A stretch of DNA of 64,000 nucleotides from Podarcis muralis. Its lineage: Eukaryota. Position 1 is the first letter of the stretch. Each line of letters starts with the position of its first letter. The DNA is taken from assembly GCF_964188315.1 (NCBI RefSeq), contig NC_135656.1, positions 120,962,001 through 121,026,000 on the forward strand. Reading direction: 5' to 3'. Positions 18,899 to 63,146 of this stretch are shown piece after piece. The notes beneath the pieces were generated by a model. That model worked only from the letters and a program-made list of their open reading frames with translations. It searched no databases and was not told where the DNA came from. Position numbers and translations under genes: made by a program.

Positions 18899-19149
18899 AG
18901 AATAAACCTGGTTAAGGGGTGCCGGGAGAAGATGTATGGTTCAACTAAACCACCTTTTGATGAGATGATTCCACTAATGAGATGGTTTCCTGTCCTGTAA
19001 TAATTTGCAGGCTGATTTGGATAACGAGGCAGGAATACTTGGCAGTACTCTGTCCTGTGTCCGTGGACTGCCTGGGGCATTAGCAGCAACAGCAGCAACA
19101 GCAGCAGAGATACCATTCTAGCAGTGCCTGTGCCAGTCGCCTTCATCAT
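18899..19149 (-). CDS. V2R-A exon 1 (signal peptide); start at 19149 or 19116
   Basis: [30 protein letters not shown]...[14 protein letters not shown]; phase-2 donor CT|gtaggt. Confidence 0.85.
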
Positions 19150-19619
19150 GGCAGCAATGACGTCAAGGACACAGCTGGATTCCTGCCATGGATTCATATC
19201 TAAAGTCAGGAGGAGAAAGCTTCCCAATGGCCTTTCCTCGATCTCAGATCAGACTCCCACTGGCACAGGACTTAATCTTTTCCCCCAAGAAATTTGTTGG
19301 AGGAACTGAAGATGGAGGAAGGGGGTTAGCCAAGCAAGCCAGTTGCTAATGTCAGCTGATTAGTCAGTGAGGGAGTCTTGTGAAATGACTCAAAGTCTGG
19401 GCTATGTCATGCAATTGCTGGAGCAATAGAATTACTTTCTACTTGTATATATCTGTATCTGCAAACACCACAAGCTGTATGTATATATCAGTGTCTGCAA
19501 CTGCATTGCTGAAGCCTGATCTTCTGCAGCAATAAACTATTGAGAACCTACAGCTGCCTCTGTGTGGTGAATGGAGCTGGGGGCAACTTCCGCAGCATGG
19601 GTACCTCACCCTTAGAATC

Positions 19620-19930
19620 TCAACAGTATTTATGTCACAGTTCTTCTTTCTGGCTTGCTGCAGGAAGTCGCCACATGTTGTTCTGGATTCAGATGTTTGT
19701 ATTATTGGTCTCAGGGGAAATCCCCGGAGCTTTGGCGTGAGGGGAAGAATACACCATTATGATTTTCGTAATTATAGAGGGGAAGAAGGTCCACCTCTAC
19801 AACCTTCTGGCGCCTCTCCATGGCTCAAGGAAGAGGTGCAGAGCTGGAGGAAAAACATGTTTGTGAGATATCACTGATGGGTCTCCATAGCTGGAGATGG
19901 GCCAGCAGCTGAACTTGGCACACTTTGTAT
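19620..19930 (-). promoter_or_regulatory. Conserved V2R upstream module of V2R-A
   Basis: Plus-strand ATTTATG at 19628, TCTCAGGGGA at 19709, TAATTA at 19769; aligns with the other three genes. Confidence 0.7.
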
Positions 19931-21193: not shown

Positions 21194-21360
21194 NNNNNNN
21201 NNNNNNNNNNNNNNNNNNNNNNNNNNNNNNNNNNNNNNNNNNNNNNNNNNNNNNNNNNNNNNNNNNNNNNNNNNNNNNNNNNNNNNNNNNNNNNNNNNNN
21301 NNNNNNNNNNNNNNNNNNNNNNNNNNNNNNNNNNNNNNNNNNNNNNNNNNNNNNNNNNNN
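21194..21360. other. Assembly gap (167 N)
   Basis: Run of N immediately after an L2 3' end. Confidence 1.
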
Positions 21361-30683: not shown

Positions 30684-32457
30684 ACAAACAAACAAACAAG
30701 CAGTTATGACAACCTCCCATTTTTCTCTCAGTGAAAACAAGATGCCACGTTCTTTCTTTAATAAAGGAAGAGTATAATGGAATATATGCTGTTTTGCTTT
30801 ATTAGAGAAGCGTAGAAAGCAAGTACAAGAATTACGACATGATAATAAGGAGGCTGACATTGCAGGACATTGTGGAAGGACGTGTGGATCCAGAATTGGC
30901 CCCCACAGTCACTTATGGACTCATTGTTAAAACTGTGTTTATGGAAGACAATCTTACTCGGCTACGAGTGATTGCCAAAGAATAATAATAATATAAAACC
31001 TTTCAAAATTAACCTTTATATCATTGCAATTTATACTTTATCCAGTTCTAATTACACTCATTACAAAATATCTCAAAAAATTAAATTAATATAGAAAGAT
31101 AGAAAATTTCTCATTACAAGCCTTCAGACCACCTTGCTAGTGATGTTAATTGCTTACAATGATCTTTCAGATATCGTATAAATTTGCTCTAGTCCTTTAG
31201 AAATACTTGATCGTGCTGGTTTCAGATTTTTCCTGTCAGCTTCACCAGTTCTGAAAAGTCCATCATCTTCATCTGCCACTCTTCATTCATTGGTACTTCT
31301 TGTTTCCATTTTTGGGATAAAAGAATTATTGCTGCAGTTGTTGCATACATAAATGGTATTTTATCTTCCCTTGGTATCTCGTCACCCACTATGCCCAATA
31401 GAAAGGCTTCTGTTTTTTTAACAAAAGTATTTTTAAACATTTTATATAACTCATTATATACCATTTCCCAGAAAGCCTTTACCTCTTTGCAAGTCCACAT
31501 GTGGTAGAAGATACCTTCCCTTTCTTTACATTCCCAACACTTATTGGTTCTTGTCTTGTACATTTTAGCAAGTTTAGCTGGTGTTAAATATCAACCTAGA
31601 GCCTGTTTCTAGCTTCTGGCTCACACACCTCAACCTGGGCTTTCATCTTTCTACCTACCAGCCAGTTGTTTTCTGGCATGAAGCCTCCTCCTTTGTTACC
31701 TGAATGAGCCATACTTAGTGGGTCATTATCAAGAAACTAGAGGGACGTGGTTGGTGCTGTGGGTTAAACCACAGAGCCTAGGACTTGCTGATCAGAAGGT
31801 TGATGGTTCAAATCCCCACGACGGGGTGAGCTCCCGTTGCTCGGTCCCTGCTCCTGCCAACCCAGCAGTTTGAAAGCACGTCACGTGCAAGTAGATAAAT
31901 AGGTACCGCTCCGGCGGGAAGGTAAACGGCCTTTTCCTTGTGCTGCTCTGGTTCGCCAGAAGCAGCTTAGTCATGCTGGCCACGTGACCCAGAAGCTGTA
32001 CGCCGGCTCCCTCGTCCCTCGGCCAATAAAGTGAGATGAGCACCGCAACCCCAGAGTCGGCCACGACTGGACCTAATGGTCAGGGATCCCTTTACCTATC
32101 AAGAAACTGGCCTGGCTGCCTAACACCTTTTCCCCAACTCACACCAATATAGTCTGTCACCCCCTGTTAGCTGAGGTCAGTCACAATGCAGGTGGGGCAG
32201 AATTAACTCCTTCAGCATGTAGTTACTTACTCAAGAATCCCAATGAAAGGTGGCTGGGAGAAGGCATAGGGTCCCAATACAGCAAGTTTTGGAGAGATGA
32301 CTCCACTCACAAGGTAGTCCCCTAACCTATAATAATTCACTGGTTCCTGTGAATACAAGGAGAGATTGAACGAGCATTTTGCCTTCTGCATCCCCCAGAC
32401 TGCCTGGCACAGGAGCAGTGATATCATTCTAGCAGCACCAGAGACAGTCACCGCCAT
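22239..32457 (-). CDS. V2R-B: intact vomeronasal type-2 receptor, about 856 aa
   Basis: Exons 32457-32231, 30645-30354, 28370-27585, 26392-26165, 24283-24157, 23149-22239; total 2571 nt, in frame, canonical splice sites. Confidence 0.92.
23734..24097 (+). mobile_element. Sauria SINE
   Basis: TSD TATACTTAAACC; ACCTTT tail. Confidence 0.9.
24157..24283 (-). CDS. V2R-B exon 5
   Basis: [42 protein letters not shown]; 127 nt. Confidence 0.9.
24547..25478 (+). mobile_element. L1-type retroposed insertion with (GAAA)n tail; Tigger-like MITE nested
   Basis: 17-bp TSD AAGAAAAGGGAATATGT at 24530 and 25479; absent at the homologous site in V2R-C and V2R-D. Confidence 0.7.
26165..26392 (-). CDS. V2R-B exon 4
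   Basis: [35 protein letters not shown]...WPSHFNK; 228 nt. Confidence 0.9.
26460..27290 (-). mobile_element. L1-clade 3' fragment (same 3' UTR recurs at 39120-39445; another L1 piece at about 23380-23720)
   Basis: YLLGILNG...[17 protein letters not shown]; near-identical 3' UTR at 39120-39445. Confidence 0.75.
27585..28370 (-). CDS. V2R-B exon 3
   Basis: [29 protein letters not shown]...LQPWQ; 786 nt. Confidence 0.9.
28594..28930 (+). mobile_element. Sauria SINE
   Basis: TSD TATTGTTCTTCTTCAG. Confidence 0.9.
29780..30300 (+). mobile_element. CR1 LINE endonuclease-region fragment
   Basis: YRPPSQ...[13 protein letters not shown]...SILDLALT. Confidence 0.8.
30354..30645 (-). CDS. V2R-B exon 2
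   Basis: [33 protein letters not shown]...YKIPQ; 292 nt. Confidence 0.9.
30648..30700. repeat. (GCAA)n(ACAA)n microsatellite at the V2R-B exon 2 acceptor
   Basis: Direct reading. Confidence 0.95.
31140..31600 (-). mobile_element. L1-clade ORF2 C-terminal fragment
   Basis: [25 protein letters not shown] (CCHC-like) ... [16 protein letters not shown]. Confidence 0.8.
31741..32096 (+). mobile_element. Sauria SINE
   Basis: TSD TATCAAGAAACT. Confidence 0.9.
32231..32457 (-). CDS. V2R-B exon 1
   Basis: [22 protein letters not shown]...[15 protein letters not shown]; donor GA|gtaagt. Confidence 0.85.
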
Positions 32458-32569
32458 TCGGACCAGCCATGAATTCAGATTTAAAGGCAGTGAAAGAAAC
32501 TGGCATAGACCCAGCCTGCCCCAAATCTCACCTCAGGCTTATTAATAAACAATATCTATTTATAATTTT

Positions 32570-32800
32570 GAGGAGGATTTATGTTACTTTGCTATCCATG
32601 TGATAAGCTGCATCATACGACCCTTGATGGTGATGTTTCGATTACTGAGCTCTGGAGAAATCCCTGGAGTTTTGGTTTCAGGAGAAGAATAAATCACTAT
32701 AATTTCCATAATTATATGAGAAATAAAGTTTACCACTGCAACTCCCAGGTCTGTCTGTGTGGTTCATTGAACAGGAAAAACATGTTTGCAAGAAATCGCT
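32570..32800 (-). promoter_or_regulatory. Conserved V2R upstream module of V2R-B
   Basis: ATTTATG at 32577, GCTCTGGAGAAATCCCTGGAG at 32649, TAATTA at 32709. Confidence 0.65.
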
Positions 32801-35800
32801 GACATCGTTTCAGAGTTTGGGCCAGCGACGGGTTGTGTGACTGAACTTTGCAAACTTTGAAATGAAGAAACAGTTGCAGAAGAGGCAAGATTGAAATGGT
32901 CTTACTTTTAGGCTATATATGAACGGGGAAGGGGGATTCATCCCTCTCCTGCTACCCTGCCCGGCCACTATGCAGAAACACTTATCGTGTCTGTTGGGTA
33001 GCCCCATTTCACTGTCCTGCCTGTCAGCAGAAGACCAGCTTTTTCTTGTGGGATGATGAGCGTATGGGTTGGAAGTCTGGCCAACTGTGTGCAGGCCTTA
33101 CCAGTGTTTATTGTAGCTACTTCTTCGGCAATCACTCATAGCCAAGTAAGATTGTCTTCTATATGTCCGTAAGTGACGGTGGAGGCCAATCAAGTTCCCC
33201 AATGAAACATACAGCTTCTCTAATTAAGTAACCCAAGAAAGAGAAACCTGAGGAACAAAGGCAAGGCTTGTACCAACTCACAAACGGTGTCTAAAAGGGG
33301 AAATTATCATGTATGGAGGAGGAAGATGATTTCCTTTGACTCAATACACAACATCTTTCTTGTGAGCTGGCTGACCTCACCCCATTCCTTTAATCAATGG
33401 CAGAGGCCCACATCCTGAGGGAGCAGCTAGCCAATACACCAGTCGAGAGTGGGGGGGATCCCCTCCCCCCCAAACTTGGAGGTCCAAGCGTGTCAGAGAA
33501 CAAAGGAGATGAGTGGGGTGGGGAGGGACTTCCCATTGGCGTGCTTCTTGCTGTGGAAGTGAGGCGGAGCCAGAGTAAGCAACTGATATCCTTACGGAGG
33601 GTTGCCTGTTTGTGCTTGCAACATAATGCTGTAATAAAAGGAATATAAATCTACCAAATGCTCATAAATTCTTATCGGTGAGCTACCAGAAGGAAGAGGG
33701 GAACTCCCGTACTTGACAACAGACCTCATTTCAGACCTCTTCCAACTGGATTCTCTTTATTTATTCCTCACTTCACCCCTACTTTTCTGGCTATATCCAT
33801 CCTCCCTCCCCTTTAATTTATCCTGTGTTGCGTTCCAAAAGCAAGGAAGGATTGCACCCTGATTAATAAAATACACATGAGGCTTGACCAGCAAGACTCT
33901 GGGAGGAGTGCCAATAATAATCTCTCCACCCCTTGGCCCAGGTCGTTTTATTCACAAAAGAACTTTTTACACAGTGTTCGTAAGAACCAACCAGATTTCC
34001 TTTGAACATTTCAAAAAAAAACCCACGTGGGACAAAGTCAGATCAGAAGAAATCCTTTTAACTACAAAGAAACTATTTCCTACTTGAGTATGCATACGTG
34101 GTTAAGCTAAATAAACAAGAACCAAGGAGGAATGCATTTACCATCTCCGTGTAAACTGTGTTTCTGGCCCTTAAGATCTATCTAAAGATTAACAAAACTA
34201 ACAAAAGCTAAATCAAAGCTACCTTCTATCTTTATGGCTCAGGATGCCTGGTGAACAACTGGCCTGTGTTTAGAATGCTTATACGTCCCTGTCAGGCGTA
34301 GAGAAAGAAAATGGCAGAGGTGCAGAGGCTTGTGGGATTCGGTCAGAAATGATTGTCAATGACTCAAACCCAGTTAAGCAATGCTTTCATCGTGACACAA
34401 TGGCTGGTTCCATTTTTTATAATCCCTCATAGCAATCCCACCTGACCCCCACAATCCTGGTCCTTTTCTCCTTGAGTCTTCCACCATGTTGCTGCCAGCA
34501 GAGCGTGACTGAGGCCCGGTCTGCAATGTGAGCCCTTCTCTCTGATTCTAATGCCTCCTCCTCACTCACAGTTGCAGAGGAAAATTGGCCCCTGGCGTTA
34601 CCATGGAGGCGACCTAAGCTAGAGCTGCAAGCTCTTCATTATGCCATAATGTATGATGTCACAAGCAGCATAAGCTCTGCTCATGTTCTCAGAAATAAAA
34701 GCTGCCACTTTTCTTGCTGGCAGAGCTCTTGTGCGGCTAGTGAGTGCCTCAGAGGCATCGTTACTCGCAGGCAATCATCATTAGATTTGCACGCTATGAA
34801 AAGGTTCCTCAGGAGAACTGCTCTCTGTCAGTCAGCCACTAAAACTACAGGAGGCTAACAAGAAAGAAAGAAAACGAAGGAGCATAGCAGACCACAGATT
34901 ATATATCCATTGACAGCCTTGTGGTCAGTTTGGCATTTCTGCGCCACCAGGTTGTATTTTGAACTTGGCAGAAAATGCAAAGAGCAAAACTGCACCCCAT
35001 TTGAAACTTGAGATAAGGGTCATGATTCCTGACTGGCTCTCTCCTCTCCTATTTCTATCCTATAGATCCTCTCCTGTGCCTGTCTGATTTGACCAGTTTG
35101 CCTGCCTTTTCACCATTATTAACTGTAATGCTACTGGATTATTAGGCAGGCAACAGGGTAGGGTTATGTGGGACTAAGTGGTTAGGGGACAATGAATGAG
35201 ACTAGTTTGTGATGAATGTTAATGTCCAGTTTTACTGTTTCCCCGTCATGACTCCCAGGCTAGCTGCTTGGAGAAATCAGAGACACAGAGAGCTTCTGCT
35301 AGCTCTTTTATTTAAATCAACAGGATACACATAGAGACTATGGATTATGCTCTCTTCAGTCTCGAGACATTGCTCAGAGTGCCTGCTCCACCCCCATTGT
35401 GGCACTTCCTAGCTTCCAAAACCCTCCTTACTGTCTACAGTGGCTAGCAATGGAATATTTCTGTCTCTGTTTAGCCTTCTGCTCTAAGATATGAAGGAAT
35501 CGCCTGGTCTGTGGAGAAGGAGGAGGTTCCACCAGGCTTTCAAGTGATGTAGTGTCCACTGTCTGAGTACTGTTTCTCTGACTTCTGAGTCCTGTCCCTG
35601 TTCAGAACTAGAGCATCTGCTGGTTCCTCATCTCCCATTATTTCTCAGCTCTTTGTTTCTTCTTCTGGGGGGTGTCCTGTTTGTCACCACCACCAATCTG
35701 GGTCCATTGTATCCCCATTTTCCTCCTGCTTGGAGGCTTCTTGAGGTGGAAGTCTCCACCACTACTCCTCACCTGCCCAGTCCCTGACACCCCTGAAATT

Positions 35801-46500: not shown

Positions 46501-48428
46501 GACTGCTGGCCATCCCAGTCCCTACCTGTGGGATTTTGTAGATGCCCAACATGCTAGAAACATGGGTAGAAATGTCCGATTCAGCCCCTTCAATAACAGC
46601 CAAGAGGTTCTTGCGACTTCCACAGTTGTAGTTTGGGATATTCATTTCCCCACCAGAATGCCCGTCCAGCAGGGCACTGGAAACCACTCTGCCATCGAAA
46701 TAGGTTTCAAAGAGGTTGTAGCCCAAGGTGATGTTGGTTAAAATCAAGGGATCCTGATTAATCTCCTGAACAGCAAACAAGAAGGACAGAATGTGCCAGT
46801 ACTTCTCTTCAGAGATACTGCAAAGCATCAAATAAAACACTTGTGACAGGCTGCCATCATCCATTCAGTGAAAACAAAATGCCATATTCTTTCTAAAGGC
46901 CTTCTCAGGTACATACACCTCAAACCAGGGTAAGGTAAAGGTAAAGGGACCCCTGACCATTAGGTCCTGTCATGGCCGACTCTGGGGTTGCGGCGCTCAT
47001 CTCGCTTTATTGGCCGAGGGAGCCGGCGTACAGCTTCCGGGTCATGTGGCCAGCATGACTAAGCCGCTTCTGGCGAACCAGAGCAGCACACGGAAACACC
47101 ATTTACCTTTCCACCGGAGCGGTACCTATTTATCTAATTGCACTTTGACGTGCTTTCGAACTGCTAGGTTGGCAGGAGCAGGGACTGAGCAACGGGAGCT
47201 CACCCCGTCACGGGGATTCAAACCGCTGACCTTCTGATCGGCAAGCCCTAGGCTCTGTGGTTTAACACACAGTGCCACCCACATCCCCAAAACAGGGTAT
47301 CTCTGGGTAATTCTTTCTATGTTTTTGTTGGGGGAGAGATACAGTTCCTGGCTACAAGTTGGATAGTTATTTGCCGCTTTTGAAAAACAGCAGAGAGGTT
47401 ATTGTTCACAGCCTTTAAAGAACAAAATCAACTTTTTTTTAGAGGTTTGTGGTTTGGAAGCTGATCAAAGCATGTGTTAAGAAGATGTGGTTTTATACAT
47501 CTTCCTATGTTGAAAATGAATGTTCATCCTTTACACTGGGTAAGAGAAACAGGCACTTGTTAACTTGTTCATATACAATCTATAGATTTAGGACTGAGCA
47601 GTGAAGTGGCCAAGTTTGCTGATGATGGTAGATTCTTCAGGGTCAGTACCACAAAAAGAAATTGTGAAGATCTCCAAAGGACCTAACAAATCTGAAAGAA
47701 TGCTTGATAAAGCCCAGATATCGTCTGAGTGTTGCTTAAGCTTTGTACAAGCAAGCCACAATGAATGTCGGATAAACAACTCATCTGAAACGAGGAGCCA
47801 TCACACTCAATATCGGGAGATAACCTGGCTAGGAGTACCAGAAAACAAGAGCTGTCCTTGGTACCTGGGATCAGTCAAAGCACAGGTGGGGCGGTGTTCA
47901 ATCCTGGTACATTCTTAAGGAAATCAGCCCTGAGTGCTCACTGGAAGGACAGATCCTGAAGCTGAGGCTCCAAGACTTTGGCCACCTCACGAGAAGAGAA
48001 GACTCCCTGGAAAAGACCCTGACGTTGGGAAAGATGGAGGGCACAAGGAGAAGGGGACGACAGAGGACGAGATGGTTGGACAGTGTTCTCGAAGCTACGA
48101 ACATGAGTTTGACCAAGCTGCGGGGGGCAGTGGAAGACTGGCATGCTTTGGTCCATGGGGTCACGAAGAGTTGGACATGACTAAACGACTAAACAACAAA
48201 TACAACTTACTCACGAGGCCTGATTAATGGAGGTTGAGAGAAGATGTATTCATCAAACACAGCAGCTTTGGGTGAGATGATTCCGCTAATGAGATGGTCC
48301 CCTGCCCTGTAATAATTCACTGGTTCATTCTGAAGCCAGATCAGATCCACAGAGCATCTACCCCGCTGTGTCCCACAGGCAGCCTGTGGCATTAGCAGCA
48401 GCAGCTGCAGAAGCAGGAGTGATATCAT
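37081..48428 (-). CDS. V2R-C: intact vomeronasal type-2 receptor, about 856 aa
   Basis: Exons 48428-48211, 46817-46526, 44948-44145, 41794-41567, 39813-39687, 37982-37081; total 2571 nt, in frame. Confidence 0.92.
38259..38747 (-). mobile_element. Solo LTR
   Basis: TGTCAGGA...TCCTGACA; 5-bp TSD ACCTA; minus-strand AATAAA. Confidence 0.85.
39687..39813 (-). CDS. V2R-C exon 5
   Basis: [42 protein letters not shown]. Confidence 0.9.
39915..40359 (+). mobile_element. Solo LTR in V2R-C intron 4
   Basis: TG...CA; TSD AATAC/ACTAC; empty site AAATACTGCTGATG in V2R-D (about 55902). Confidence 0.82.
40676..41027 (-). mobile_element. Sauria SINE (diverged subfamily)
   Basis: (AAAGGT)n tail and body similarity. 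Confidence 0.8.
41567..41794 (-). CDS. V2R-C exon 4
   Basis: [35 protein letters not shown]...WPLQFKE; 228 nt. Confidence 0.9.
41935..42388 (+). mobile_element. CR1 3' fragment nested in an older, oppositely oriented CR1 (about 41887-42790 -)
   Basis: [39 protein letters not shown]; (ATTCTATG)n tail. Confidence 0.88.
43230..43575 (+). mobile_element. L2 3' fragment
   Basis: [16 protein letters not shown]; (TTA)n tail. Confidence 0.88.
44145..44948 (-). CDS. V2R-C exon 3
   Basis: [23 protein letters not shown]...LQPWQ; 804 nt. Confidence 0.9.
45095..45260. mobile_element. Penelope-like element terminal-repeat remnant
   Basis: Inverted repeat TTCCAGTAGCACCTT / AAGGTGCTACTGGAA encloses the hammerhead; GGTAGCCGTGTTGGTCTG end motif. 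Confidence 0.65.
45164..45209 (+). ncRNA. Minimal type I hammerhead ribozyme motif (Penelope-like element derived)
   Basis: CTTGGTAT-CTGAAGA-A-GTGTGCATGCACAC-GAAA-GC-TC-ATACCAAG: perfect 8-bp stem I, catalytic core, palindromic stem II, palindromic AGCT stem III. Confidence 0.75.
46526..46817 (-). CDS. V2R-C exon 2
   Basis: [23 protein letters not shown]...YKIPQ; 292 nt. Confidence 0.9.
46933..47287 (-). mobile_element. Sauria SINE
   Basis: TSD approximately AA(C/A)CAGGGTA. Confidence 0.9.
47910..48200 (+). mobile_element. Bov-B 3' fragment
   Basis: Starts CATTCTTAAGGAAATCAGCCC; ends GACTAAACAAC. Confidence 0.9.
48211..48428 (-). CDS. V2R-C exon 1
   Basis: [19 protein letters not shown]...[15 protein letters not shown]; in-frame upstream TAA; donor GA|gtaagt. 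Confidence 0.88.
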
Positions 48429-48604: not shown

Positions 48605-48920
48605 AGGAGGTATTTATGTCACAGTTATTCTCACAAGCTCGTTGCAAGAAGTTACATCACATTGCCCATGATTGTGATGCTTAGAATATAGGTCTCAGGG
48701 GAAATTCCTAGAGCTTTGGTGTGAAGAGAGGAATTAATCATTATGATTGTGATAATTATAAAGGGGAATAAGTTTCCCATTTGCTACCTCTTGGGCTCTC
48801 TGCATGGTGCAATGAGCAGGTGGAGAGCTAGAGAGAAAACGTGTTTCTGAGAAATCACCAATAGGGCTTCATTGTCTGCCATGGACCAGTGAGGGAGCAG
48901 GTGAACTTGGAAAACGTTGT
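48605..48920 (-). promoter_or_regulatory. Conserved V2R upstream module of V2R-C
   Basis: ATTTATG at 48612, TCTCAGGGGA at 48693, TAATTA at 48753. Confidence 0.7.
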
Positions 48921-49011
48921 GGCAATGAAACACTTTCACATTAGGCAGGATGAAAATGTTATTTGTTTTAGACTAGTGGTTCCCAACCTTTTTTTGGCCA
49001 TGCCCCACCTA

Positions 49012-49360
49012 AAGGTAAAAGGACCCCTGACCATTAGGTCCAGTCGTGGCCAACTCTGGGGTTGCGACACTCATCTCGCTTTATTGGCCGAGGGAGCCAG
49101 CGTACAGCTTCTGGGTCATGTGGCCAGCATGACTAAGCCGCTTCTGACGAACCAGAGCAGTGCACAGAAACACCGTTTACCTTCCCGCTGGAGCAGTACC
49201 TATTTATCTACTTGCACTTTGACATGCTTTCGGACTGCTAGGTTGGCAGGAGCAGGGACCGAGCAACGGGAGCTCACCCCGTCGCAGGGATTCGAACCGC
49301 CGACCTTATGATCAGCAAGTCCTAGGCTCTGTGGTTTAACCCACAGCGCCACCTGCGTCC
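49012..49360 (-). mobile_element. Sauria SINE
   Basis: TSD CCCACCTAA; inserted in a hAT-like end (TAGTGGTTCCCAACCTT). Confidence 0.9.
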
Positions 49361-50128
49361 CCACCTAAGCACTTCTAAAATCCTGATTCCCCACCTGAGC
49401 ACCTCTAAAATCCTGATTCCCAACCGATATGTATTTCTTATTACAGTGGTACCTTGGGTTAAGTACTTAATTCATTCTGGAGGTCCATTCTTAACCTGAA
49501 ACTGTTCTTAACCTGAGGTAAAACTTTAGATAATGGGGTCTCCCGATGCTGCTGCGCCACCGCCGCATGATTTCTGTTCTCATCCTGAAGCAAAGTTCTT
49601 AACCCAAGGTACTATTTCTGGGTTAGCGGAGTCTGTAACCTGAAGCGTATGTAACCCGAGGTACCACTGTATTCAAATGTGAACTTCTATTCGTGCAGAG
49701 GAAGCCTAAAAGGCCATTAACTTGGTGTAATTTATTCTCGAATTGCCCCCCTTAAAAATCAAATAGCCCCCCTGAACCATCACCCATATGCTTACCTGGG
49801 GGGCAGTCATCCCTCCCCACCATGCAAAAACTCTTTTGTTGTCTGCTGATAGCCCCATTTCCTACCAGTCATTATAAGACACCAAGTTTGTTAATAATCC
49901 TTCTCTTGTAAAGCACATATTGTGAATTGGTTAGTTGCTCCTCAATAATCTGCACCTCTGCAGTTGCCTTCTGCTTAATCATGCTGTTTTCTAATAGGGA
50001 AAAAATTCTGAAGAAATTTGCAGAGAATGATCACTGGGGCTGGCCGATAGATCATCCAATACCGGTTTGAAGTCCATGTCATGATATCAGTTTCATAATT
50101 TTTGACCTGGCAATATATCGCAAATCAT

Positions 50129-51237: not shown

Positions 51238-51618
51238 TCACTTCATTTTCATCATGAGATTCTCCTTCGGATTCAGATCAGGCCTAAGCACAATAATGTA
51301 GCACTTGGGAAGGAAGATGCAGCCCAGAAGCCCAGCACTGGAGGCCAAGATAGAGAAGACCTGCACGGCTACCATGTATTTCCCCTTGGTGCTCAGGTAG
51401 GTGAGCACAAAGGAAGCCCAAACATTGCACCAAACCAGCATGCTGAAAGTGATAATCTTGGCTTCATTGAAGGCAGCTTCCTGGCCAGGAAAGCCATTCT
51501 GAAGCAGATGGCAACCAGGAGGCCCATGTAGCCGAGGGCACTGTAAAACATGGCAACAGCTCCTTCATTACATATCAGGATTAAATGGAGTTGGCCAGAC
51601 TCTCCCCCAGCCATTTCC
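51238..51618 (-). pseudogene. Orphan V2R exon-6 3' fragment with two internal deletions
   Basis: [19 protein letters not shown]...LARKLP, then frameshift, then ...[40 protein letters not shown]; no matching exons 1-5 found nearby. Confidence 0.85.
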
Positions 51619-52491
51619 TAGTGTTTCTAGTGCTTTGGCTTCTGTCACAGTGTTCCATGCGCTGCAAGCGATTTAGGCATGCTGGCCACATGACCTGGAA
51701 AGTGGTCTGCAGGCAAACGTCCAGGGGTCCTTTACCTACCAGACCACCTTAATAATCATTCTGGTGTCAATCACACACCTGTTACTGTGCTGCCATCCTT
51801 CAGACATCTCATGGAGGAGGCACACAAAGAAGGGCCTGCTGATAATAGCAAAATGTATCTCGTGAAGAAGTATTATTACGTGTTAAGGAGCAGGGCATGC
51901 TCAGTATGACTATGAAAACTGGATGCAATATTTTTATTTTTATGAGTATAACATCCTCCATCCGTAGATCTTAGGACAGTTCTAAAAAACACAAAATACA
52001 TAATAGAAATAGGAACGAAAACCAATAATCCCCCCTCCCACAACACATTCAAAAGGGCATGGGACATCAATCAGCCCTAGGCCTGGTTGAAGAGGAAGGT
52101 TTTTGCCTAGCACCTAAATTATAAATAATGAAGGCGCAAGGCGAACCTCCCTGGGGAGGGTATTCCTCAAATGAGGAGCCATCACAGAAAAGGCCCGTTC
52201 TCTTGTTGCCACCATCTGGACCTCTCCTGGAGGAGCCACATGAAGAAGGGCTTCAGATGATGAGAGATGGTCCATGAAGTATTGTGATCCTGAGCCTTTT
52301 AATGCTCAGTATCATCACTTAATGCTGTAAGTCCTCATCTCTCCTCTCCTCCTCTGATTAAGGGATTCCTTTTCAAATCCCCTGCCGAGCTACTTTTCTC
52401 CAGTTTCTCCCTCCTCTGCCAGGGAAAAAGGAGCATCTATCATCATCATCATCAAACCTTTTATTGGCATCACATACAAACAGGAGCATCT

Positions 52492-57345: not shown

Positions 57346-60300
57346 TTATTGGATTTTACATTTTTATCATATTACAACATATCAGATCATCAAAATCGTA
57401 CCTACGGGACCGCCTCTCCTGGCATGTCCCACAGAGGAACTTACAGTCTTCAAACAAAAACATCTTGAACGTCCCAGGCCGCAGAGAGGTTAGGCTGGCC
57501 TCAACCAGAGCCAGGGCTTTTTCAGCTGTGGCTCCGATCTGGTGGAACGCTCTGTCACAAGAGACTAGGGCCCTGCGGGACTTGACATCTTTCCTCAGGG
57601 CCTGCAAGACAGAGCTGTTCCACCAGGACGTTGGCCAGGGCACAGCCTGACTCCCTCCTTTGGCAATTCTCACAGAACTCTAGCCTAATTGGTTGCCATT
57701 AATCTGATTTGAATTAATTTTATAATGAAATGATTTTAGAATGTGTATCATTTTATTGTTGTTAGCCGCTCTGAGCCTGGCTTCGGCTGGGGAGGGCGGG
57801 ATATAAATAAAATATTATTATTATTATTAAAATCAACAAGATACACCCCCCCAAAAGAAAAATCAGAAGTTGAGGGAAGTCAGAGGGGGAGGGTGGAAAT
57901 TGGGGGAAAGCTGAGTTGCATTCTTAATTTATCACTAGAGAATGATGACTGGACCATGGAATGTCTTCTGATGCCACCAAAGCAAGCCAAATAGCATTGG
58001 AGAATCACACGTTAGATATGCCTTGGATATGCTATCACGGGTGAGGCAATTGGATTGGATTCTGGGTGCAGGACAAGGATTCAAGGGGGCGGGGAGGAAT
58101 ACCTGCCATGGCTGCAGACGTTCAAGTCCCCACCTGTCCTCTCTACCCATCATCAACACCTGCTTGAATCTGGAAGAATAGGCAGAATTTAAGGCAAGTG
58201 CCACGGCTTGGACACTGCTGTACGTAATGTAGCTGTCTTGGGACAGGGCCCTTTCAACCTCCTCTTGGGGAAGAACCTCCAGTTTCGCTTTCTCTGTGCA
58301 TCTTATCCAACCTTTCATGGGCAATACAGCCTCCGAACATAAACAATGAAATGATTCATCCCAAAATCGTAGTGTTGTGCCCGACCATGGCTTATAGTAT
58401 TCATATTTTGTCCATTTTCTGGTCTTCATTATGAAAGACAAAGAACCATGGATATACTTGAAGGTATTAATATCATAAGATAAGTTCATGTTGATGTCCT
58501 GAAAAGCTGTTGTGATCCAGACTTTCCCCCAAATTTGTACCCTTTTAAGTATCCTTTGTACCATGATGATTGGGTCAAATCGATTGGAAGCGTCCCCGTA
58601 GTAGACAGAGACATTGACTTTTCTCCACATAACAGGTGGCTTCCTCAGTATTAAAATCTGGTACAGAGTCCTTTGTTGTATTTTTTCTGAGAAGGCAACA
58701 CAGATTCCATTGCTGATCATCATAGGTGTTAAGGAACTTAAGAACCTTTCTCCACTGTCATTGTCTGGAGCAAAGAGGCCGATCCATGTCCATCCGAAAT
58801 GCAAGAGCAACTTGACAATCCCCCGGTACTGAATTTCTTCTTTGGGAACCATTTGGTAGGCAAAAGGGAACTGAGTTTTATCAGTAAGAGCAAAACCATA
58901 ACTGAGCTGCGAGGAAAGGAAGAATATCAGATATATGTTAATAACAAGCAAAAAAGGGACTGACTAGACAAGGAGGAGGCTATCAATGATTACTAGCCGC
59001 AAGGACCATGTTCTTCCTCCACTGTTGAAGGCACCATGGTCTTGAAAGCCAGTTGTTGGGAATCAAAAGTTGTAAGAGTGGCTTTTCACTCAGACTGCAC
59101 TTGCAGACTTCCCAGAAGTGGTTTCTGTTCGGCTGAAAATGGGATGCTAGACTAGACTGACTTATAGGCTGAAACAGCTTCAGGGTGTTTCTCATGTTCT
59201 TAGGACACCTCAGGCTATTATAAATAATTTTAAGAGATTCCTTCAAAAAATGGAGAGTACTAGTCATTCTTAAGGAAATAAGCCCTGAGGGCTCACTGGA
59301 AGGACAGATCCTGAAGCTCACTGGAAGGACAGATCCTCCAATACGTTGGCCACCTCATGAGAAGAGAAGACTCCCTGGAAAAGACCCTGATGTTGGGAAA
59401 GATGGAGGGCACAAGGAGAAGGGGATGATGGAGGGCACAAGGAGAAGGGGATGACAGTCGGATAGTGTTCTCGAAGCTACCAGCATGAGTTTGACTAAAC
59501 TGCGGGAGGCAGTGGAAGACAGAAGTGCCTGGCATGCTTTGGTCCATGGGATCACGAAGAGTCAGACACGACTAAACGACTAAACAACAACAACAGAGTC
59601 GAAGCGGAGCTCAGAGGTCCCTCTAATGCAGGAAATCCACCACTGTAGCTTCCCTGACTGGTGACTATCCCAGTCCCTACCTGTGGGATTTTGAAGATGC
59701 CCGACATGCAAGAAACATGGGTAGAAATGTCCGATTCAGCCCCTTCAATAACAGCCAAGAGGTTCTTGCGTCTTCCACAGTTGTAGTTTGGAATATTGCT
59801 TTCCCCACCAGAATGCCCATCCAGCATTGCATTCGAAACCACTCTGCCTTCGAAATAGGTTTCAAAGAGGTTGTAGCCCAAAGTGGTGTTGGGTAAAAGT
59901 GAAGGATCCAGATTAAACTCCTGAACAGCAAGCAAGAAAGACAGGATGTGCCAGTACTTCTGTTCTGAGATACTGCAAAACATTAAATACAGCAGTTGTG
60001 ACAGGCTGCTGTTCTCCAGTCATTGTGGGTGGGGGATGGGAGGGATGCCAAATTCTTTCTTTTTATAAATCGGAAGCCTTTCCAGGCACCATACGCTTCG
60101 AAACAGTGCATCCTCAAATAATTATTCCTATGTTTTTATTGGGGGACAGATACAGACCCTGGTTGCAAGTTGGATATTATTTTGCCACTTCCTTAAAACA
60201 TTGTAGAGTTTATAGTTTGGGATAGAAGGTCCGCAGCCTTCAAAGAACAGAACCAAATATATTTCAGAAGTTTGTGATTTGCTTGGAAGCTGATCAAAGG

Positions 60301-60887
60301 ATGTTATGGATTTGCCGGGTTCCACTTAACTGGGAGTGATCTCCATTTTGCTTATTGGGACTTACTTCTAAGTGGCTGACCACAGAGTAATGTAACTTTC
60401 ACCCTTAGTTATGGGCAATGGAGTCCTTAGCTCAGCCTTTCTCAACCTGTGGGTTCCCAGATGTTGTTGAACTACAACTCCCATCACCCCTAGCTAGCAA
60501 GGCCAGAGCTCAGGGATGATGGGAGTTGTAGTCCAACAACATCTGGGGACCTACAGGTTGAGACCGCCATGGAAACAGACCACCAGAAGGCCTTAAAGAC
60601 TTCTTGAGCCATTTCCCTGCATCTCCCTTCTGGCAGTGAAATTCGCTGACAGCCACAGCAGTGAGGGGGATGTCTTAAGGATGTGGTGGGTTTATGCTTG
60701 GCAACCAAAGAAGAAATCTTCAGTCTGCACTGCCTTTGCCTTAGCAGAGTATAGATTGCTAGGATCAAGGTTGCATATATCATTATAAAAAAGATCTCTT
60801 TGAGAGAACCACTGTCTCCTCACTCTCAATACACAAGCTGAGCCACATCTGGGAGACTAACTCATGAAAGTTATCAACAGCTAACTG

Positions 60888-60942
<55 letters not shown>

Positions 60943-61975
60943 TTATTTATACCCCAACTTCTCGGTTCAGAAAACTGGGCTCAGGGCAGCTAACAACAAA
61001 TTTAAAACACTTAATTGATACAACAACAAAAACAGCATAAAATGCAGTATAAAACGTGAATAACAATAAATTCAGAATTCAAAAATCAATTTAGGGGGAA
61101 ATCCATCCAATAAACATGAGATGATCACCAGGGCTAGCTGGCTAAATTAGTCCTATTTGGGCCAGTGAGGAGACCAGGGGAGAGTTAGCTGTGGGATCCC
61201 AGAGCGGGTAATCTTTATAAAAAGGTGAGGGGGAGAGAAGAAAAGGAAGGGGAATAAAAGATCAGGCTAAGTTCAGATTGAAAGCCATGCGGAATAGCTC
61301 TGTCTTACAGGCCCTGTGGAAGGAAGCTAAATCCTGCAGGGCCCTGGTCTCCACCAGGTTGGAGCCATCACTGAGAAGGCCCTGGCCCTGGTGGAAGATA
61401 ATCTGACTTCCTTAGGGCCCGGGACCTCTAAACTATGATTATTCATGGACCTTAAGGTCCTCTGCGGGACATACCAGGAGAGGCGGTCCCATAAATTCGA
61501 GGGCCCTAAGCCACAAAGAGCTTTAAAGGTCAAAACCAGCACCTTAAACCTGACCCAATACTTCACCGGGATCCAGTGCAACTGGTAAAGCACTGGGTGA
61601 ATATGCTGCCATGTCAGGGACCCTGTGAGGAGCCTCGCTGCAGTATTCTGCACCCACTGGTGTTTCTGGGACAGTTTCAAGGGCAGCCTCGCATAGAGCG
61701 AATTACAGTAGTTGATGTTTCTTTCCAGCAATCAAGTGGCTTATAGTTACTTACTCGGTAATCACGGTTAATGGGGGCCGAGAGAAGTTGTATGGTTTAA
61801 ATAAAGCAGTTTTTGGTGAGATGATCCCACAAATGAGATGGTCCCCTGCCCTGTAATAATTCACTGGCTCATTTTGAAGACGCATCAGATTCACAGAGCA
61901 TTTCCCTGCCTGAGTCCCACAGACAGCCTCAGGCATAAGCAGCAGCAGCAGTGATATCATCCTAGCAGTGACCAT
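53212..61975 (-). CDS. V2R-D: intact vomeronasal type-2 receptor, about 857 aa; closest paralogue of V2R-C
   Basis: Exons 61975-61755, 59972-59681, 58906-58103, 57218-56991, 55803-55677, 54113-53212; total 2574 nt, in frame. Shares intron-4 blocks with V2R-C. Confidence 0.92.
54158..54469 (+). mobile_element. Bov-B 3' fragment
   Basis: TSD AATGT(G/C)TTCTGC; (CAA)n tail. Confidence 0.9.
54597..55046 (-). mobile_element. Solo LTR nested in a CR1 3' end
   Basis: TG...CA; 5-bp TSD GTTGA; flanks rejoin to a CR1 tail ending ATTCTATGATTCT. Confidence 0.88.
55677..55803 (-). CDS. V2R-D exon 5
   Basis: [42 protein letters not shown]; donor G|gtgcgt. Confidence 0.9.
56090..56440 (-). mobile_element. 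L1-type 3' UTR fragment
   Basis: TSD GTGATTGATGACTTT; empty site in V2R-C at about 40545. Confidence 0.7.
56991..57218 (-). CDS. V2R-D exon 4
   Basis: [35 protein letters not shown]...WPLQFQE. Confidence 0.9.
57390..57830 (+). mobile_element. L2 3' fragment (second subfamily; related pieces at 29345-29545 - and 60890-61710 -)
   Basis: [15 protein letters not shown]; [12 protein letters not shown]...[22 protein letters not shown] in the 61327-61731 ORF. Confidence 0.8.
58103..58906 (-). CDS. V2R-D exon 3
   Basis: [23 protein letters not shown]...LQPWQ; 804 nt. Confidence 0.9.
59265..59596 (+). mobile_element. Bov-B 3' fragment with two small internal tandem duplications
   Basis: Starts CATTCTTAAGGAAAT; TCACTGGAAGGACAGATCCT and GATGGAGGGCACAAGGAGAAGGGGAT are each duplicated. 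Confidence 0.88.
59681..59972 (-). CDS. V2R-D exon 2
   Basis: [23 protein letters not shown]...FKIPQ; 292 nt. Confidence 0.9.
61755..61975 (-). CDS. V2R-D exon 1 (start at 61975 or 61960)
   Basis: [20 protein letters not shown]...[15 protein letters not shown]; donor GA|gtaagt. Confidence 0.85.
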
Positions 61976-62114
61976 GATAGGCAGTGACTTCAGTAGCACA
62001 CCTGGGCTCTAGCCATGGATTCAGAGCTAAAGCTAGCAATAAAAAGCTTCCCACCTTCACAGTCCCTGCCTGCCCTGAACCTCAGACCAGGCTCTTGGTG
62101 ATGCTTAACCTTTT

Positions 62115-62355
62115 TAGAAGCATTTATGGCATCAATCTTCCTTCAAGCTTCTTACAAGATGTGGACTCATTTTCTCCTTGATTCTGAAGTTTAGGTTATT
62201 GGTCTCAGGGGAAATCCTACAAGATTTGGTGCGAGTAGAGGAATACATCACTATGATTTTGATAATTATACAGGGGAAGAAGTTTCCTGTCTGCAACCTC
62301 GTGGACTCTCTGCTTGGCTCACTGGGCAGGTGCGGAGTTGGAGAGAAAACATGTT
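62115..62355 (-). promoter_or_regulatory. Conserved V2R upstream module of V2R-D (distal part displaced by an insertion)
   Basis: ATTTATG at 62122, TCTCAGGGGA at 62203, TAATTA at 62263. Confidence 0.7.
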
Positions 62356-63146
62356 TGTGATTCGAGGACCCGATCCCCGCTTGGGGAATAAAGACACGTG
62401 GACACAGTATGTAAGGTTAATGGGTAAGGAAAAGGCCACAACTTTATTGATTACAGCATGTGAGAAGGTATTGGCTTAGGCATTGGACCATGGAACATTA
62501 GACTCCACCCACTCAGAGAGGGGTGAGCCCAAAGGGGGTTTATTCACCAGAAGGTGGAGCCTGTTGCTGCTAATACAACTATAGGCTCTCTCCTGATGTC
62601 ACCGAGGGTCGTGCCATGGCCCCCCGCCACACGGGCATCGGACAGGATCCACGACCGCCAGATTCCTTTAGCGGAATACCCAAAATTGTCAGGGAAGGTG
62701 ATGGCCACACCTTGCCCCCCGAAACACCAACAACACATTCCAATGCCTAACCGCCAAATACCACGAAAGTTGTGACGGTTGCTACAATGTAGGCGGAAAA
62801 AAACCAAGAGGCCGGGCCAATTTAGCCAATTGGAAAAAACTCCTACCAGGCTCCCTGGTTAAACAGGGCGACCAACCAGAGGTCCATAGCAAAGTCTCAG
62901 GAAAAGCTAGTCTAAAGGGAGTGGAGGGTGGGTGACTCGAAGAAAATGTGTGTGCAATGGTGGGGATGGCTAGCGCGGCCACATTTGAACGGCAAGCCAC
63001 GCCCCCGCCGAGCTTCCCTATTGGGTGCCCAACCGGGGAGGGCGCGCCAGCCCTGGAGTTGAAGCAGGGGGCGGAGCGCCCCCTGCATGACGCAGGAATC
63101 GTCTCCCACTCACAACCCCTCCCCTCCGGGAGGAGGAGAGGCTTTT
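62356..63146 (-). mobile_element. LTR-like GC-rich insertion upstream of V2R-D
   Basis: Absent from the paralogous upstream block (ATGTTT.TGAGA.ATCAC). Starts TGTGA, TCACA at 63110-63114, minus-strand AATAAA near the gene-proximal end; no clean TSD. Confidence 0.55.

Follow-up and report, generated by a model that had tools for sequence, protein, structure and literature searches.

V2Rs are the dominant chemoreceptor family of snakes and lizards, and the choice and transcription of V2R genes are poorly understood, even in mouse. The closest described systems are those of other chemosensory receptors. Promoters of odorant receptor (OR) genes contain O/E, homeodomain (HD) and TBP motifs, all at most a few hundred bp from the transcription start site (TSS; PMC12547500, PMC3247239), and the published O/E core, TCCCyngrga, is that of MatBase V$NOLF (PMC3247239). 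Mouse V1R promoters are reported to be conserved among paralogs and to carry O/E-like motifs (PMC1955453, PMC3247230). In the mouse VNO, AP-2epsilon peaks are jointly enriched for Ebf, Dlx and Lhx motifs (PMC9525060), while Lhx2 and Emx2 are among the top transcription factors co-varying with V2R expression in the rattlesnake vomeronasal epithelium (PMC12400810). No description of a reptile V2R promoter motif was found in the literature searched, coverage of which was incomplete.

In the window, by which we mean the whole stretch of 64,000 nucleotides analysed here, motifs of these kinds fall in a block of ~240 bp that lies upstream of V2R exon 1 and ends with CATAAAT. As in mammalian OR promoters, an HD site of the TAATTA type and an O/E-like site of the TCCCyngrga type occur at most ~200 bp upstream of a TATA-like box, and the HD and O/E sites are separate rather than juxtaposed (PMC12547500, PMC3247239). 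The block also resembles OR promoters in being without a CpG island (CpG observed/expected 0.22-0.40). In contrast to OR promoters, it has a GC content of 38-46%, as against ~36%, and serves class C V2R genes of six exons, in another organ and another clade. Its HD site is invariant and its O/E-like site variable, whereas O/E is the most enriched motif of OR promoters, and it contains extra conserved islands, one forkhead-like and one reading AAACATGTTT. A second likeness is to the promoters of mouse V1R subfamilies (PMC1955453, PMC3247230), which are likewise reported to be duplicated with the gene and conserved among vomeronasal receptor paralogs. What we found matches this precedent, in that an upstream block is conserved among paralogs, co-duplicated with its gene and unseen elsewhere in the 544 kb scanned. 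However, V1Rs are unrelated genes with a single coding exon and 5' non-coding exons, and the V1R promoter conservation described is within mouse subfamilies, whereas the V2R block extends across several squamate families. Greek island enhancers of OR genes share HD and O/E-type motifs with the block, but in their composite, enhancer-specific Lhx2/Ebf motif the two sites are adjacent (PMC12547500). In the V2R block the sites stand apart, their starts being separated by 40-58 nt in every copy, and there is one block per gene, beside the gene 5' end. In its arrangement of motifs, the block resembles OR promoters rather than Greek-island enhancers.

A tblastn search with a full-length skink V2R query revealed four tandem V2R genes (A-D), of six exons each, on the minus strand of the window. 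Consistent with this layout, the long minus-strand ORFs include four 7tm_3 exons and four ANF_receptor exons, as identified by a Pfam scan. The signal peptide is encoded by exon 1 in all four genes. The V2R exons were analysed one by one. The window also contains a run of N at 21194-21360. The coordinates are:

~9.6-19.2 kb, minus strand: V2R gene A, ATG at 19116
~22.2-32.4 kb, minus strand: V2R gene B, ATG at 32427
~37.1-48.4 kb, minus strand: V2R gene C, ATG at 48428
~53.2-62.0 kb, minus strand: V2R gene D, ATG at 61960
61757..61960, minus strand: exon 1 of gene D, encoding the signal peptide and lying downstream of the block

An orphan V2R 7TM exon fragment is located between genes C and D (51247-51587, minus strand). 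It aligns to skink V2R residues 744-859 as two pieces, the overlapping ends of which suggest a frameshift, and it is probably a pseudogene remnant. Genes C and D are 93% identical in exon 6, 89% around exon 2 and 71% across the block and exon 1, with 4-fold divergence rising from 0.10 (exon 6) up to 0.30 (exon 1); this mosaic suggests gene conversion of the 3' parts. Dispersed repeats populate the V2R introns and intergenic DNA (59265-59595, 60428-60546, 60959-61763, 62408-62700, 49010-49363 and ~ten other places), and the element at 49010-49363 has at least 10 copies within the window, at 76-91% identity.

The initial annotation of this DNA had described a fixed-spacing module of HD, O/E-like and TATA-like motifs upstream of every V2R gene. 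A motif search of the window reproduced its positions for TAATTA (19769, 32709, 48753, 62263), for TCTCAGGGGA (19709, 48693 and 62203, with no other exact match in the window), for the gene B variant of the latter and for ATTTATG, which is CATAAAT in the sense orientation (19628, 32577, 48612, 62122). From these coordinates the spacings of 60 nt and of 81 nt (A, C, D) or 72 nt (B) are exact, and the blocks that contain the motifs are indeed located upstream of exon 1 in each of genes A-D. From the upstream edge of the block to the presumed 5' UTR, the features are:

19625..19866, minus strand: block of gene A, from blastn and MAFFT alignments and nhmmer (E 1e-58)
32577..32804, minus strand: block of gene B, in which two deletions, of 14 bp and 9 bp, set it apart from A, C and D (nhmmer)
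48612..48850, minus strand: block of gene C, from blastn/MAFFT alignments and nhmmer
62119..62360, minus strand: block of gene D, from blastn/MAFFT alignments and nhmmer
62347..62356, minus strand: gene D palindrome AAACATGTTT, an island bordering the block on its 5' side; found in all lizard copies, including Podarcis, Hemicordylus and Heteronotia
19853-19862 (A), 32778-32787 (B) and 48837-48846 (C, reading AAACACGTTT), minus strand: equivalents of the palindromic island
62250..62270, minus strand: gene D homeodomain-type core plus extension, TATAATTATCAAAATCATAGT; no other element of the block is as conserved
19756-19776 (A), 32696-32716 (B) and 48740-48760 (C), minus strand: equivalents of the homeodomain core, from a coordinate check
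62203..62212 (D), 19709-19718 (A) and 48693-48702 (C), minus strand: O/E-like site TCCCCTGAGA, an exact match to TCCCYNGRGA
32649-32658, minus strand: degenerate TCTCCAGAGC (sense) at the O/E position of gene B
32661-32670, minus strand: sense ACTCCAGGGA of gene B, under which lies an opposite-strand O/E site with one mismatch, 12 nt upstream of the degenerate site
under 19721-19730: second, opposite-strand O/E site of gene A, with one mismatch
62185..62192, minus strand: forkhead-like island, consensus (T)GTAAACATCA, reading AAACTTCA in gene D; the second most conserved non-coding island
32631-32640, minus strand: gene B copy of the forkhead-like island, CGAAACATCA
62122..62128 (D), 19628-19634 (A), 32577-32583 (B) and 48612-48618 (C), minus strand: TATA-like CATAAAT
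32557-32564, minus strand: second, canonical and better TATA box of gene B, TATAAATA
62026..62082, minus strand: downstream islands of gene D, presumed 5' UTR, consisting of GGTTCAGGGCAGGCAGGGACTGTG and then a pyrimidine-rich tract ending TTTAG

The A, C and D blocks align over 239 bp with zero gaps, and B differs from them by its two deletions. The fixed spacing put forward as a signal in its own right is therefore a matter of shared descent: it is constant within the window because A, C and D arose by tandem duplication free of indels, and one of the two deletions accounts for the 72 nt, in place of 81 nt, in B. Taken singly, TAATTA, TCTCAGGGGA and ATTTATG are no commoner in the window than in shuffles, and the signal is the co-occurrence of the motifs at four homologous places, not their frequency. 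The exact three-part pattern (TAATTA, 50-58 nt, TCYCNNGRG, 60-80 nt, CATAAAT) did not carry over to other loci, being present in none of the first eight fetched.

The distance from the end of the block to the ATG is 156-190 bp in B, C and D, and 518 bp in A. In gene A, a unique insert of ~350 bp (within 19226-19625) separates the block from the conserved 5' UTR and exon 1, and no other copies of this insert were found in the window or in the fetched loci. One Podarcis copy (fetched locus L009:18890-19629) has a SINE-like insertion at the same place as the gene A insert.

When D was compared with A and B by blastn, the block was the only collinear non-coding alignment besides intron stretches next to exons 4-5 and dispersed repeats, although the non-aligning flanks provide a weak test because they hold transposable elements. 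Pairwise divergence of the block (0.25-0.36) is similar to that at 4-fold sites of exon 6 (0.25-0.31). In exon 1, 4-fold divergence between A/B and C/D is 0.50-0.67, approximately twice that of the block (0.26-0.36 in this comparison; one-sided Fisher p 0.006-0.045, from small numbers), while between C and D the block shows no such advantage over exon 1 4-fold sites. The window alone suggests constraint on the block.

To obtain relatives, the gene A 7TM exon was searched against protein representatives, and related V2R loci were fetched with 10-kb flanks. With a profile built from the four window blocks, Tiliqua, Varanus and Pituophis gave matches 5' of V2R exon 1, as Thamnophis did weakly. 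A 13-sequence profile yielded four further copies outside its training set; a 17-sequence profile yielded three copies in Podarcis muralis and one in Hemicordylus capensis, again out of sample; and a 21-sequence profile yielded one out-of-sample copy in the gecko Heteronotia binoei (E 2e-30). In total, nine matches (4 + 4 + 1) thus came from sequences absent from the profile that found them. Across the 544 kb scanned, nhmmer gave 22 matches with E below 1e-5, all on the gene strand and at V2R 5' ends, and no copies away from V2R 5' ends. In 20 of the 22, the exon 1 match begins 96-516 bp downstream of the end of the profile match; one of the remaining two lies at a locus edge and the other (Podarcis, 2130-1874) has no detected exon 1. 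Beyond the four genes of the window, the block occurs at 18 further V2R '26-like' genes. The taxa besides the window are Podarcis, Hemicordylus, Tiliqua, Varanus, Pituophis, Thamnophis, Crotalus and Heteronotia, and the nine squamate species to which we refer are the window plus these eight, with Podarcis muralis counted among the eight.

Profile searches of upstream regions from more distant V2Rs, namely those of Eublepharis, of possum and of a second Tiliqua locus, gave no significant match, and resemblances noted there by eye were treated as chance. On the evidence of the profile matches, one large V2R clade has the block as its ancestral 5' flank, and the block is older than the split between geckos and other squamates. 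Purifying selection is the straightforward reading of this distribution, since neutral DNA would not stay alignable for that long. Judged by its conservation and position, the block is a real, ancient regulatory element that is linked to V2R exon 1 and under selection.

Mean column identity in the 21-sequence alignment (A2) is 47%. Against this background no column is invariant except the three of ATT in TAATTA and a single A in the neighbouring AATC; columns that are at least 90% conserved comprise the complete ATTAT as well as the AAA of TAAACA. In a weighted 17-sequence alignment, with mean information of 0.65 bits per column, the 8-mer TAATTATC is the best of all at 1.48 bits per column, compared with 1.20 for the stretch coding for the signal peptide. 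It is followed by the forkhead-like 8-mer AAACATCA (1.12; (T)GTAAACATCA in snakes), by TCATAGTG, located 5 nt past the homeodomain core (1.09), by a CAGGC..AGG island downstream of the TATA-like box (1.00) and by ATGCCA(T/C)A, which runs into CATAAAT (0.88). Both TAATTATC and the upstream palindrome AAACATGTTT are present in all four out-of-sample lizard copies and in the gecko. The homeodomain-type TAATTA of the initial annotation thus holds up well, occurring in all four genes and being the single most conserved feature of the block across species. The conserved extension beside this core is AAAATCATAGTGAT, also written AATCATAGTGAT.

Immediately past the homeodomain extension, several copies read TGATNNAT (62241-62249 in D, 32687-32695 in B and 48731-48739 in C). 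This element takes the forms TGATGTAT, TGATTTAT and TGATTAAT, with TGATTGAT in Tiliqua, and may resemble a Pbx-Hox-type site. Parts of the block were also read, by eye only, as AP-2, GATA, Pbx-Hox or Onecut sites; none of these readings is claimed.

Conservation of the O/E-like site is of a different kind. Its columns are less than 70% conserved in A2, and the site falls outside the top 14 8-mers of the 17-sequence alignment. In 12 of the 22 promoters, an O/E-like site with at most one mismatch was found in the 75 nt that follow the HD core, a tenfold excess over the 5.4% of random 75-mers drawn from the same loci, although 12 of 22 overstates independence because the promoters are related, with roughly four or five lineages contributing. 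The sites cluster at +40 to +44 or +54 to +58. Those with one mismatch include the gecko (TCCCCTGGGC), two Varanus (TCCCCTGGGG and TCCCCAGGGG), three snake and two Podarcis genes, while at the aligned O/E position the nearest relatives, from Podarcis and Hemicordylus, show at least two mismatches. A palindromic O/E site at 52148-52157 was dropped, as it is by eye apparently repeat sequence. The OR-like combination of HD and O/E sites proposed in the initial annotation therefore stands in part: the conserved HD site, the exact O/E core in A, C and D and the O/E enrichment speak for it, whereas the degenerate site of gene B and the unconserved O/E columns speak against it.

A similar picture emerges for the TATA-like box. 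In 14 of the 22 promoters, a box of the ATAAAT type is found at +109 to +165 relative to the HD core. The gecko shares CATAAAT with the window; Hemicordylus has CATAAAG and, at the aligned place, Tiliqua has TATAAAG and Crotalus GATAAAT. Of the proposal that CATAAAT is a TATA variant, the recurrence of a TATA-like box at about the same place survives; the CATAAAT columns themselves are unconserved in A2. In most lineages outside the window, a conserved CA-containing island (GGGACAGGCAGGGACTGTG) starts 30-44 nt after the TATA-like box, which is where a TATA-directed start would be expected from the sequence; in the window genes the corresponding distance is 58-76 nt. Further downstream, from gecko to snakes and in most lineages, there is a pyrimidine tract of ~10-20 nt ending CAG/TAG, ~40-110 nt upstream of the ATG (62026-62033 in D). 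This tract, 75-110 nt past the TATA-like box, is reminiscent of a 3' splice site; if it were used for splicing, the TSS could be elsewhere.

An upstream ATG in the context GAATCCATGG (62012-62023 in D, with equivalents) is conserved in A-D and opens uORFs of 2-13 codons. In Varanus, the equivalent upstream ATG is in frame and annotated as the start.

Four raw-read RNA runs of the species, from tissues that were probably not vomeronasal, gave zero depth on gene D exons 1-3 and the block. Reads on 57900-62700 occurred only at repeats (59.2-59.7, 60.3-60.6 and 61.0-61.8 kb, and above 62.4 kb). The reads on these repeats derive from other copies, with 97-98% continuing into unlike sequence. There were no transcript contigs among 44 matches to the N-terminal 250 residues of a Crotalus V2R, all being genome annotations or UniRef entries. 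Representative proteins with N-terminal extensions, considered as transcripts, turned out to be ab initio genome models.

We consider it likely that the block comprises the proximal promoter and the first part of the 5' UTR of the large squamate V2R clade annotated as 'vomeronasal type-2 receptor 26-like'. Each new V2R copy would have inherited the block with its gene, and purifying selection would have kept it since before geckos split from other squamates. The putative anchor is the homeodomain-type site TAATTATC with its conserved extension AAAATCATAGTGAT. Downstream of this anchor would follow the O/E (EBF/Olf-1)-like site at +40 to +58, the forkhead-like GTAAACATCA at about +64 to +91 and the TATA-like ATAAAT-type box at about +109 to +165, with transcription predicted to start some tens of bases past the latter. 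As in odorant-receptor promoters, an Lhx2/Emx2-class (LIM/Emx-type) homeodomain factor and EBF-type factors may drive expression, here specific to vomeronasal neurons, and the element may contribute to how often each V2R is chosen. Within this HD, O/E and TATA-like reading, the sequence evidence strongly supports the homeodomain site and moderately supports the O/E-like site and the TATA-like box.

Several results weigh against a promoter: the 58-76 nt between TATA-like box and island in the window genes, the second and better TATA box of gene B, the unconserved O/E-like and TATA-like columns, the C-D comparison and the lack of matches at more distant V2Rs. The insertions that gene A and one Podarcis gene carry between block and exon 1 are further points against a promoter, and such tolerance is more readily accommodated if the block were the 3' end of a 5'-UTR intron or part of a non-coding leader, with transcription starting further upstream and a non-coding first exon spliced to the pyrimidine tract and its YAG, and with the motifs acting as intronic regulatory or splicing elements. 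The conservation of that tract 5' of the ATG in most lineages would fit such an arrangement, as would the fact that 5' non-coding exons are common in OR and V1R genes (PMC4154679), although mouse V2R transcripts, as reconstructed, exceed their coding sequence by only ~350 nt (PMC4154679). We nevertheless regard an intron as unlikely. In alignments inspected by eye there is no conserved splice donor at a workable distance, the donor-like GTs past the TATA-like box being only 40-60 nt from the putative acceptor, and the AG of that acceptor is missing in B and in one Varanus copy. Moreover, the anatomy is promoter-like: the HD site is invariant, and a TATA-like box and a CA-containing island come after it at a constant distance. 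It is far less probable still that the block has no function, being a dispersed repeat or a remnant passively left by recent tandem duplication or gene conversion. The gap-free A, C and D copies, a block divergence near that of exon 6 4-fold sites (and, for C-D, of exon 1 4-fold sites) and the transposable elements that weaken the test by non-alignment would all be compatible with a remnant. However, the same block is found in the same order and at approximately the same distance from exon 1 in nine species that span the gecko-snake split, its invariant columns persist against a mean identity of 47%, and no copy lies off V2R 5' ends in 544 kb.

A further alternative concerns the identity of the factor at one site and is compatible with the promoter reading: the O/E element might be a Rel/NF-kB- or NFAT-type site, or functionless, in which case only the homeodomain and forkhead-like sites would matter and the HD plus O/E grammar would be coincidental. 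On the sense strand, the gene A sequence GGGGATTTCC would fit the consensus GGGRNWYYCC and the gene C sequence AGGAATTTCC the consensus HGGARNYYCC, both of the Rel/NF-kB or NFAT type; gene D, however, falls outside the kB consensus. The low conservation of the O/E columns, the mismatches of the Podarcis and Hemicordylus copies at the aligned position and the degenerate site of gene B would be explained in this way. The exact match of A, C and D to the published O/E core (PMC3247239) and the recurrence of one-mismatch O/E-like sites in the same 20-nt zone, tenfold over background, argue against it, and we therefore hold this alternative to be possible but doubtful.

As a probable conserved chemoreceptor-family promoter, the block is a kind of element to be expected for such a family. 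A bolder proposal, which we put forward only tentatively and which draws on analogy with ORs, is that one ancestral V2R promoter has been kept for approximately the whole of squamate history, and that its invariant Lhx2/Emx2-type site, with the bipartite extension and the EBF-type site, might mediate singular receptor choice. If true, the OR-style Lhx2/Ebf choice machinery would act on an unrelated class C receptor family. Being short, sharply bounded, found from gecko to snake and equipped with one invariant homeodomain core, the block offers a handle for the prediction of V2R start sites and for first-exon annotation. It also allows the Lhx2/EBF logic of odorant receptors to be probed in vomeronasal class C receptors, and could serve to separate intact from promoter-dead copies in the very large V2R repertoires of squamates.
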